Below are positions 11,111-12,590 of a stretch of 64,000 nt of DNA, one piece after another. This stretch comes from Chrysemys picta bellii (Eukaryota). A program made the position numbers and the translations under genes. The stretch is from contig NC_088815.1 in the NCBI RefSeq assembly GCF_011386835.1, positions 13,082,001 to 13,146,000 on the forward strand. Reading direction: 5' to 3'. Under the pieces are notes generated by a model. The model was not told where the DNA came from. It searched no databases and saw only the letters and a list, made by a program, of their open reading frames with translations. Within the stretch, counting starts at the first letter, position 1; each line of letters starts with the position of its first letter.

Positions 11111-11705
11111 GGGCACCTGAGACGGTGACACACAGCTTAGGAAAAGCCAGCGGCTGCCCGGAGCCCTCGCTTACCCCAGCCAGGTCAGGTTCAAGCTTGC
11201 CATTTGGAAATTGGCATCAGGTTCTCCTAATGGCTCAACGAAACGCCTGGTCCAAGAGTCCCGTCCGAACATGAGCAACGAGATCAGGGCTGTCCACTGG
11301 GAAGGGGTTACGGAGGCAAATCCTGTAGCATTTTTAGCTTTAAAGATGAAACGCCCCCCTCACATACCCCCTAGCGTTTCCAATGAGCATGAGGGGCGAT
11401 TCTTGGGAAGCTGCATTCATGAGGCGTGGCGGGTTCTTGGAGATTCCAGGCAAGATGCAGCAATGCCAGATCTTCCATTAAATCAAAGCACACCCCGGGG
11501 TTACCTGGCTGGGTGGCTTTCTGGCCCTATGATTTGGATACAGAAACAAGAAGCCACACTGGGGACGTCTGTGAAAGTCTAACGCACATTGAGAAGTGCA
11601 TCAGGACTAGGAGGTGGGGCTTGTTACTGTCGAGAGCAAACCCTCCTGGGCCAGCTTTTTGTCTCTGCTCCCAATCTCTCGGCATTGCAGAGAGGCCAGA
11701 CAACC

Positions 11706-12590
11706 TCACAAGGCCTTTTCCTTAATTTCCACGATATTCTGTTCCAAAGTCGCGCCCGCCTGCTTCAGCTCTTCGCACTTCGCCTTCAGCAGACTGCAGG
11801 CCTTCTGCAGCCGCTGGTTCATCTCTACGTAAGAATGACTCTGCTGGTACAGGCGCTCGCTCTTCACTTCAGACTCCTCCTTCTTCCTAGGGGCTGGCAA
11901 GTCTGGGATGGGGAAATGCGGGAGGAAAAGACAGAGAATAACATGAATGTAAAAGGGGTAGTAGTCTCTTCATGTAAAGCTAAGTTACATTTTGGATCAG
12001 GTACACCTTCAGGTCCGTTTATAGCCTCAAAACTGGCACAGCCCAGGTAGCGGCAGGGGATGTTTCCCTACCATGCTCTGACCAACGCGCCTTACTTACG
12101 AACAGGGGAGGATACCTGTACAGGTGAAAGGGAAGGTCAGTCTCCAGGCCCCATGAGGTCTATGACTTCCCTGAAAAAATTGTCAACAAGAGCACCAATC
12201 ACAGCTGTGGATTTTGGGCTATAAAGAGGTGTCCTCCAAGAACAGGACTGAGACCCAGCAATTCATGTCACCCAAGCCAACAAACTGGTAAAATGGCAGC
12301 TTTCTGGGCTAATTTGTGCAATGCTCGCTGATGGAGATTTTATAACATAGGTAGGATTGGAGTGGACAGAGACAGGCTCCCATCGTCTGGTAGATTTCAT
12401 ACAGAACGGGTCATGGAGATTCCTGGAGCAAAGGGCTGGGATGCATTCTCCTACCTTTACTGGACTCTGCTAGAAGGACAAACATGGGATCGGACGGCTG
12501 GGTGCTCCTGATGTCCTCGAGGATCTGTTCCACGCTGGGTGGTTCAGGCCGGGTCGGCAGAACCACCCGCTTCTTGCCTTTCGAGCTCAT
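11706..12590 (-). CDS. C19orf25: UPF0449 protein C19orf25 ortholog, 110 aa. Coding exons 12455-12590 and 11706-11902; probable non-coding exon ending 13537, acceptor at 12617
   Basis: [29 protein letters not shown]...[33 protein letters not shown] matches recalled human C19orf25. Phase-1 GT-AG intron gives 333 nt. Confidence 0.93.

Follow-up and report, generated by a model that had tools for sequence, protein, structure and literature searches.

C19orf25 and a downstream TIR-domain reading frame probably share one bicistronic transcription unit in the painted turtle

The DNA analyzed here, referred to as the window, is a stretch of 64,000 nt from the painted turtle Chrysemys picta bellii (contig NC_088815.1, positions 13,082,001 to 13,146,000), which carries on its minus strand the gene C19orf25, a member of the UPF0449 family, followed by an open reading frame (ORF) encoding a TIR domain. 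It is considered probable that C19orf25 and the TIR ORF are transcribed together as a single unit, which gives a bicistronic mRNA and not a fusion protein. The locus has one promoter region, one polyadenylation (poly(A)) region and a continuous terminal exon that contains both ORFs. This reading rests on the continuity of RNA contigs, on the splice junctions found in them, on the absence of a poly(A) signal from the gap between the ORFs, and on the conservation of both the layout and the coding sequences. An earlier note on this DNA, made from the sequence alone, had suggested that the two ORFs share a transcript, either through bicistronic read-through or through an in-frame spliced fusion. 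The read-through is borne out by contigs from four studies and by four further species, and the spliced fusion is not.

A continuous terminal exon with two reading frames

On the minus strand, neither AATAAA nor ATTAAA (AWTAAA) occurs between 15137 and 10414, in agreement with the earlier note, which had described the interval between the C19orf25 stop and the TIR ORF as free of these signals. Only weak variants (AAAAAG, TTTAAA) are found in this gap, and the first canonical signals, again as described, lie past the TIR stop (Table 1). Because the sole poly(A) signals are situated beyond the TIR ORF, every full-length C19orf25 mRNA carries the TIR ORF in what is annotated as its 3' untranslated region (UTR).

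Fourteen RNA-like runs of the painted turtle, from six studies, were surveyed by counting in each the share of sampled sequence words of 10300-12700. They contain 0.60-0.74 of these words, and whole-genome-like runs 0.93-0.99; RNA made up of exon 2 and all of 11902-10300 should give a share of 0.68-0.74, and at most about 0.49 if the 595-nt gap is left out. Four of the runs (X1, X5, X6 and X13, from four studies) were then assembled on 9900-12750; the tandem repeat and exon 1 fall outside this region, and exon 1 was therefore found through loose-end sequence. From each run one contig was obtained, 1.6-1.8 kb long and spliced 12455>11902 with GT..AG borders, which identifies the runs as RNA and corresponds to the removal of a 552-nt intron between exon 2 and the terminal exon. 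Three of the four contigs have a loose end at exon 2 (~12617-12620), which maps uniquely to 13540-13569, that is, to exon 1. Downstream, the contigs are unbroken from 11902 to 10295/10296 (X5, X6) or to 10428/10431 (X1, X13), and no joint except 12455>11902 and no loose end besides the exon 1 one was seen in the four runs. The main contig of X1 has a depth of 435, and intronic fragments were recovered from this run at a depth of 2.9-4.0, but no gap junction; splicing within the gap, had it exceeded roughly 1%, would probably have been noticed.

Exon 1 has its 3' end at 13537, with the donor CAG/GTGAAC (the slash marks the splice boundary here and below), and its 5' end at or past 13627. Inspection of the sequence directly upstream found motifs resembling the cAMP response element, the GC box and ETS sites. 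Exon 2 ends in phase 1 (donor G/GTAGGA). The positions that the earlier note had given for the C19orf25 ATG (12590), the phase-1 end of exon 2 (12455), the stop (11708-11706) and the TIR ORF (11110-10604) agree with those found here. The terminal exon, of about 1.6 kb, comprises the C-terminal coding part of C19orf25, the spacer, the TIR ORF and the 3' UTR.

Table 1. Features of the C19orf25-TIR locus, in positions of the window
Feature	Positions	Strand	Evidence or remark
C19orf25 exon 1, non-coding	13537..13627	-	RNA contig loose end; contig X1 has 88 nt of exon 1
C19orf25 exon 2, ATG at 12590	12455..12617	-	joint 12455>11902 in 4/4 runs, GT..AG
Terminal exon of the shared transcript	10296..11902	-	one contig per run, without gap or joint
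Last 65 C19orf25 codons and stop TGA (11708-11706)	11706..11902	-	Pfam UPF0449, 8.3e-14
Intercistronic spacer	11096..11705	-	595 nt to ATG 11110, 610 nt to ATG 11095
Conserved spacer element (~45 nt), TTTGATTTA..GGA.GATCTGG..TTGC.GC..CTTGC.TGG	11440..11487	-	turtles compared with birds
TIR-only ORF, stop TAG 10606-10604	10604..11110	-	Pfam TIR_2/TIR
Three poly(A) signals: AATAAA 10414-10409, ATTAAA 10385-10380, ATTAAA 10314-10309	10309..10414	-	all past the TIR stop
Candidate micro-exon, 22 nt	11505..11526	-	sequence present; use not detected
Second in-frame path, all of C19orf25 to TIR (265 aa)	11072..11710	-	exon end 11710, exon start 11072
Weak acceptor GGGGTAAG/CG, exon start 11169	11169..11171	-	tblastn mapping of Ensembl models P0002, P0003, P0004

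The 3' UTR of the TIR ORF also contains, ahead of the poly(A) signals, a donor-like sequence C/GTGAGA (10426-10432, minus strand), and it is here that the contigs of X1 and X13 stop. In a Mauremys contig, the homologous donor, about 190 nt past the TIR stop, is spliced to the first exons of a trypsin-like gene downstream, giving three ORFs in all (L015 compared with L014:5696>7276). The donor at 10426-10432 may be used in the painted turtle too. An Ensembl model of Terrapene likewise leaves the TIR exon and continues at 9715-9680 in a further exon.

The same layout in other species

An exact search for the TIR protein of the window in assembled contigs gave no match, and the RNA contigs of other species were found via orthologues. 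In Mauremys, at least nine RNA contigs contain exon 1, exon 2 and the terminal exon, with a 593-nt gap left unspliced. In a second turtle (L002), one RNA contig of 1632 nt holds the full spliced UPF0449 coding sequence and, 243 nt downstream, a TIR ORF with 82% identity to that of the window; the contig lacks 357 nt that are present in the Chrysemys spacer, through splicing or deletion. The arrangement extends to a hyloid frog (group assigned via UPF0449, which is 83-86% identical to that of Dendropsophus, Hyla and Bufo), in which UPF0449 (106 aa), a 158-nt spacer with 6 ATGs and the TIR ORF (139 aa) lie on a single contig, a layout seen in 24 contigs from three run series. One RNA contig of a squamate-like species has UPF0449 and TIR in the same order. 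In genomic DNA of Varanus, alligator and birds, both ORFs lie next to each other and in the same orientation, ~195-480 nt apart; contigs from pigeon align colinearly to genomic DNA and are uninformative on splicing. The presence of both ORFs on one mature spliced transcript is thus supported at contig level in five species, from which we infer single RNA molecules that span both. The two-ORF layout is at least as old as the common ancestor of frogs and amniotes.

NCBI calls the TIR protein of Tyto alba 'REEP6 isoform X3' and that of both Alligator and Mauremys mutica 'C19orf25 homolog isoform X1'; the annotation pipeline therefore put the TIR ORF into the same gene as its upstream neighbours. 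In the RefSeq records of the painted turtle (L033) and of the diamondback terrapin Malaclemys (L032), the TIR ORF is missing among the called genes. Frog orthologues are present only as unnamed proteins from assembled reads, and bird entries carry labels such as 'MYD88 protein, partial' or 'REEP6 isoform'. Altogether, this TIR family is systematically mis-annotated or unannotated. One protein cluster at 90% identity mixes 110-aa UPF0449 proteins with TIR proteins of 163-168 aa, the bridge between the two presumably being a 265-aa fusion prediction, EMP24146.1.

Two coding sequences and the spacer between them

C19orf25 and the TIR ORF both evolve as protein-coding sequence, with purifying selection on each. 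Both coding exons of C19orf25 match Pfam PF15136 (UPF0449; 57.3 and 52.3 bits, cut-off 27), and the protein is identical to the 110-aa RefSeq C19orf25 homolog of Chrysemys and Malaclemys (P0027). The ratio of non-synonymous to synonymous substitution rates (dN/dS) is 0.22-0.43 for UPF0449. For the TIR ORF, which is intact in frogs, squamates, turtles, crocodilians and birds, pairwise dN/dS is 0.14-0.37, with dS reaching values above 2. The TIR ORF has 168 codons from ATG 11110 and 163 from a second ATG at 11095, which is the conserved start and is preceded by a purine at position -3 in every lineage compared. It matches Pfam PF13676 (TIR_2; 51.6 bits, cut-off 28, 1.6e-13) and PF01582 (TIR; 35.3 bits, cut-off 21.3). 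Orthologues of ~140-180 aa are found in turtles, crocodilians, birds, squamates and frogs, and 67 residues are invariant across 12 sauropsid sequences. A profile search of 1.8 billion representatives returned 12 matches with E <=1e-27 (11 of them below 1e-30), the next falling to 1e-18, and the named close matches include no mammal and no fish.

The AlphaFold model of the TIR protein (predicted local distance difference test 73.6, predicted template modelling (TM) score 0.70) has five strands alternating with helices, and Foldseek places it among TIR domains with a probability of 1.00 and TM scores of 0.63-0.79, the top PDB matches being MyD88, Hydra TRR-2, PdTIR and TIRAP. Sequence identity to the TIR domains of MyD88, TIRAP and TRIF is at most 26%, and a search of the ESM Atlas returned generic TIR clusters only. 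The protein consists in essence of the TIR domain, preceded by 8-13 residues, and a basic tail of 25 residues rich in Ser, Lys and Arg. The BB-loop Pro (box 2, RDxxPG) is absent: the position is occupied by Ala (QDQVAGT vs RDATPGG in TIRAP), which is invariant in the 12 sauropsid sequences and is also present in frogs. TLR3 likewise has Ala at this position, and the conserved Pro is not obligatory for the TIR superfamily. The position aligned with the Glu of enzymatic TIRs, in an alignment made by eye and without structural comparison, is E or Q among birds. An assignment as the TIRAP/Mal orthologue was rejected, as the protein has no N-terminal region binding phosphatidylinositol 4,5-bisphosphate (PIP2) and only 17-21% identity to TIRAP. 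The protein is a TIR domain of the adaptor type that stands alone and has Ala where the BB loop usually has Pro, and it most likely acts via TIR-TIR contacts in Toll/IL-1 receptor signalling.

In the painted-turtle spacer there are 12 ATGs but canonical poly(A) signals are lacking, and 4-6 ATGs are found in other species. It evolves about as fast as an intron, given a Chrysemys-Mauremys identity of 94.4% for the spacer vs 93.0% for intron 2, with the exception of one element conserved in birds. This element (11440-11487) is kept in turtles and birds, and its second half in alligator (matching positions L005 ~4853-4900 and L012 ~620-650), while the remaining spacer is not alignable. In turtles, the element contains a TCF/LEF-like CTTTGAT. 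In the second turtle, the missing 357-nt stretch starts directly past GATCTGG, and an upstream ORF of nine codons runs from the conserved element (L002:560-600), its TGA overlapping the TIR start (ATGA). Such a stop/start overlap is a typical termination-reinitiation arrangement. The painted turtle does not have it, since its upstream ATG (11110) shares the reading frame of the TIR ORF.

Spliced routes and rival explanations

The fusion suggested in the earlier note would run from exon 2 through the micro-exon (11526-11505) to the TIR exon at 11135, with the N-terminus of C19orf25 fused to the TIR domain, by analogy with TAG (TRAM adaptor with GOLD domain); a second route would lead from the donor at 11505 to an acceptor at 11116. 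The described elements are present in the sequence: the 22-nt segment with its pyrimidine-rich acceptor (...CAAATCATAG/) and its donor (CAG/GTAACC), as well as the AGs before 11135 and 11116, and exon 2, the micro-exon and the sequence from 11135 onward translate as one open frame. However, no junction at 11526, 11505, 11135 or 11116 was found in the four painted-turtle runs, including the one at depth 435, nor any at the micro-exon in Mauremys contigs, although contigs can miss rare splice forms. Comparison across species shows that the frame of the micro-exon is not conserved, because the segment measures 21 nt in Mauremys, which has a 1-nt deletion in the donor region, and 21 nt in the second turtle, where the acceptor AG is one base off and an RNA contig passes unspliced through both sites. 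The caution in the earlier note that frame compatibility may arise by chance was well placed. With AG and GT as the sole requirement, the real gap offers 203 in-frame paths with one micro-exon vs 160 +/- 48 in 100 shuffles of the gap, 14 of which reach 203, a number not above chance. No database protein has the corresponding junction, and a micro-exon fusion, which we hold to be very improbable, is close to refuted.

A different in-frame path, 11710>11072, would append the TIR domain to all 110 residues of C19orf25, conceivably as a minor isoform of hard-shelled (cryptodiran) turtles. Its donor, GGCCTT/GTGAGG (11710/11709), overlaps the stop, and its acceptor, CCCTCCAG/G (11073/11072), is located directly ahead of the conserved FTYDF. 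The splice sites are fair and in frame in the window, both are kept in Mauremys, the Chelydra Ensembl model P0006 shares the acceptor at 11072, and the junction is that of EMP24146.1 (P0030), a green-turtle prediction of 2013 (...KAL to FTYDF...). Against this, the junction is in no RNA contig of painted turtle or Mauremys, the current RefSeq green-turtle proteins among those listed are all of 110 aa, and the prediction of 2013 may rest on ab initio modelling alone. Moreover, the second turtle, alligator and birds lack the donor or the acceptor, so that the deep conservation would be left unexplained. Such an isoform is regarded as improbable.

A further entry into the TIR exon, the acceptor at 11169, is used by Ensembl models of Chrysemys, Gopherus and Terrapene, which join assorted upstream exons to it; no loose end was found at this acceptor in the four runs. 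None of the TIR models of Ensembl in four turtles begins with the N-terminus of C19orf25, and EMP24146.1 is the sole fusion in the databases. The Chrysemys model P0004 has a first exon at 14236-14374 (minus strand), ~600 nt upstream of the C19orf25 promoter, with the donor GAGCC/GTGCGG; it skips every C19orf25 exon, enters the TIR exon at 11169 and is not present in the four runs. The exon at 14236-14374 may be an alternative upstream start site.

In the bicistronic reading favored here, transcription would start at a housekeeping-type promoter near 13.63 kb, and exon 1 and exon 2 (ATG 12590) would be spliced to a terminal exon of ~1.6 kb, from 11902 to ~10296, providing the last 65 C19orf25 codons with the stop, a spacer of ~600 nt and the TIR ORF, followed by the only poly(A) signals. 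Two separate proteins would then be produced from the two ORFs. Leaky scanning or reinitiation is unlikely, because the spacer has 12 AUGs (4-6 elsewhere) and comes after a 110-codon ORF. The TIR protein would more probably arise from minor mRNAs that place its AUG near the 5' end, derived from an internal start site or from exon-skipping forms such as those in the Ensembl turtle models, or else from internal initiation on the bicistronic mRNA. In a stronger version, ribosomes would reach the TIR ORF on the bicistronic mRNA by internal initiation or another non-scanning route, the obligatory coupling between a coiled-coil housekeeping protein and a TIR module of innate immunity would have been kept for >300 million years as the two proteins work together, and mammals would have lost the second cistron; this version is possible but doubtful. 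A scan of 10200-13700 with Rfam found no family above threshold, whether resembling an internal ribosome entry site or other; the sole match, uc_338 at 12011-12137 on the plus strand in intron 2, scored 23 bits vs a gathering score of 120 and is most likely due to chance. Prediction of a complex between C19orf25 and the TIR protein gave a score of 0.00, which has no weight for or against binding.

Several observations weigh against a single bicistronic unit. Contigs are assemblies, so one that spans both genes is not single-molecule proof, and they are blind to transcript starts, which makes an internal TIR promoter invisible in them. Over 10400-11400, the observed/expected ratio of CpG is 0.6-0.78 vs 0.2-0.4 in the flanks, a CpG-island-like composition compatible with an internal promoter. 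In Varanus, NCBI gives the TIR ORF a gene entry of its own. Finally, Ensembl models in four turtles enter the TIR exon by splicing, with four different N-terminal extensions taken from the exon at 14374-14236, from the exon 1 region and from out-of-frame 3' pieces of C19orf25, most of them via 11169, and the TIR domain may hence be translated from a spliced form instead of the unspliced bicistronic one. Part of this evidence would fit two overlapping but independent genes, with a TIR promoter in the terminal exon of C19orf25 or in the spacer and a monocistronic TIR mRNA, the read-through being passive in a C19orf25 that lacks its own poly(A) site. The CpG-rich composition covers the TIR ORF and the proximal spacer, the element shared by turtles and birds could be promoter-proximal, the 12 AUGs of the spacer hinder translation from the long mRNA, and the separate Varanus gene would be accounted for. 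However, none of the runs showed a break in a contig, a loose end or a cluster of starts within the spacer, with contigs being blind to starts, the TIR ORF was never found away from C19orf25 in the species examined, and this explanation still accepts the TIR ORF within C19orf25 mRNAs; we hold it to be unlikely. It is scarcely credible that the TIR ORF is an untranslated relic in the C19orf25 3' UTR. Its missing annotation in RefSeq for Chrysemys and Malaclemys, the lack of a named frog entry and its position as a second cistron behind many AUGs would agree with a relic, but an intact ORF from frogs to birds, its dN/dS values, its invariant residues and a confident TIR fold would not.

Comparison with known transcripts and TIR adaptors

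TAG, the product of TMED7-TICAM2 read-through, is a negative regulator of TLR4 signalling. As at that locus, a ubiquitously expressed upstream gene and a same-strand downstream TIR ORF are co-transcribed here. However, TAG is a spliced in-frame chimera, whereas in the C19orf25-TIR pair, which is unrelated to TMED7 and TICAM2, the upstream stop is retained, the ORFs are separate and no chimeric junction was found. The analogy with TMED7-TICAM2 (a read-through mentioned in PMC3584666), which the earlier note had drawn, therefore holds for shared transcription and fails for a chimeric protein.

Conserved vertebrate bicistronic mRNAs are rare, SNURF-SNRPN and CERS1(LASS1)-GDF1 being examples. The C19orf25-TIR unit resembles these in having two conserved ORFs on what is, at contig level, one transcript, with a single promoter and poly(A) region and a layout kept over large distances, and it differs from them in its 110-codon upstream ORF and its spacer of 158-610 nt with 4-12 AUGs, which are unfavourable for reinitiation, and in that translation of the second ORF is putative. 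STREMI-SLC35A4 and 14 human bicistronic cases have also been reported (PMC13303939), and C19orf25 is not named in that work. Our literature search found no paper on the C19orf25-TIR pair or on this TIR family. The unit can be grouped with the conserved bicistronic mRNAs of vertebrates and is a conserved unit previously undescribed.

The TIR protein shares its predicted fold with the TIR domains of MyD88, TIRAP/Mal and TRIF/TRAM, the best PDB match by sequence being the TIRAP TIR domain (2e-5). The turtle protein has the DPWC motif, as does TIRAP, and a Box-1-like FTYDFSIWY. It differs from MyD88, TIRAP and TRIF in lacking a death domain, an N-terminus that binds PIP2 and extensions of the TRIF type.

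Gene order at the locus

Over 5.5 kb, the window matches record CM062342.1 of the Chrysemys picta assembly GCA_011386835.2 with 100% identity. On the minus strand of the window, REEP6 (~24.5-19 kb) is followed by C19orf25/UPF0449, the TIR ORF and the trypsin-like gene (~8.9-4.0 kb). This order is retained in alligator, Mauremys and birds, with APC2 coming next on the opposite strand. A tandem array (12870-13467; 175-bp units, 3.5 copies, 91% match, G-rich on the minus strand) occupies much of intron 1 of C19orf25 and is the source of long spurious ORFs on both strands.

Significance

With each conserved bicistronic mRNA, nature offers a case in which the access of ribosomes to a second ORF can be tested. 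For annotation, the C19orf25-TIR unit bears on a TIR ORF that is elsewhere labelled as an isoform of C19orf25 or of REEP6, or as MYD88, and on a cluster at 90% identity in which one old fusion prediction makes two unrelated families merge. In tetrapods other than mammals, chicken and Xenopus among them, the TIR protein itself could have a so far unrecognised role in regulating Toll/IL-1 receptor signalling.

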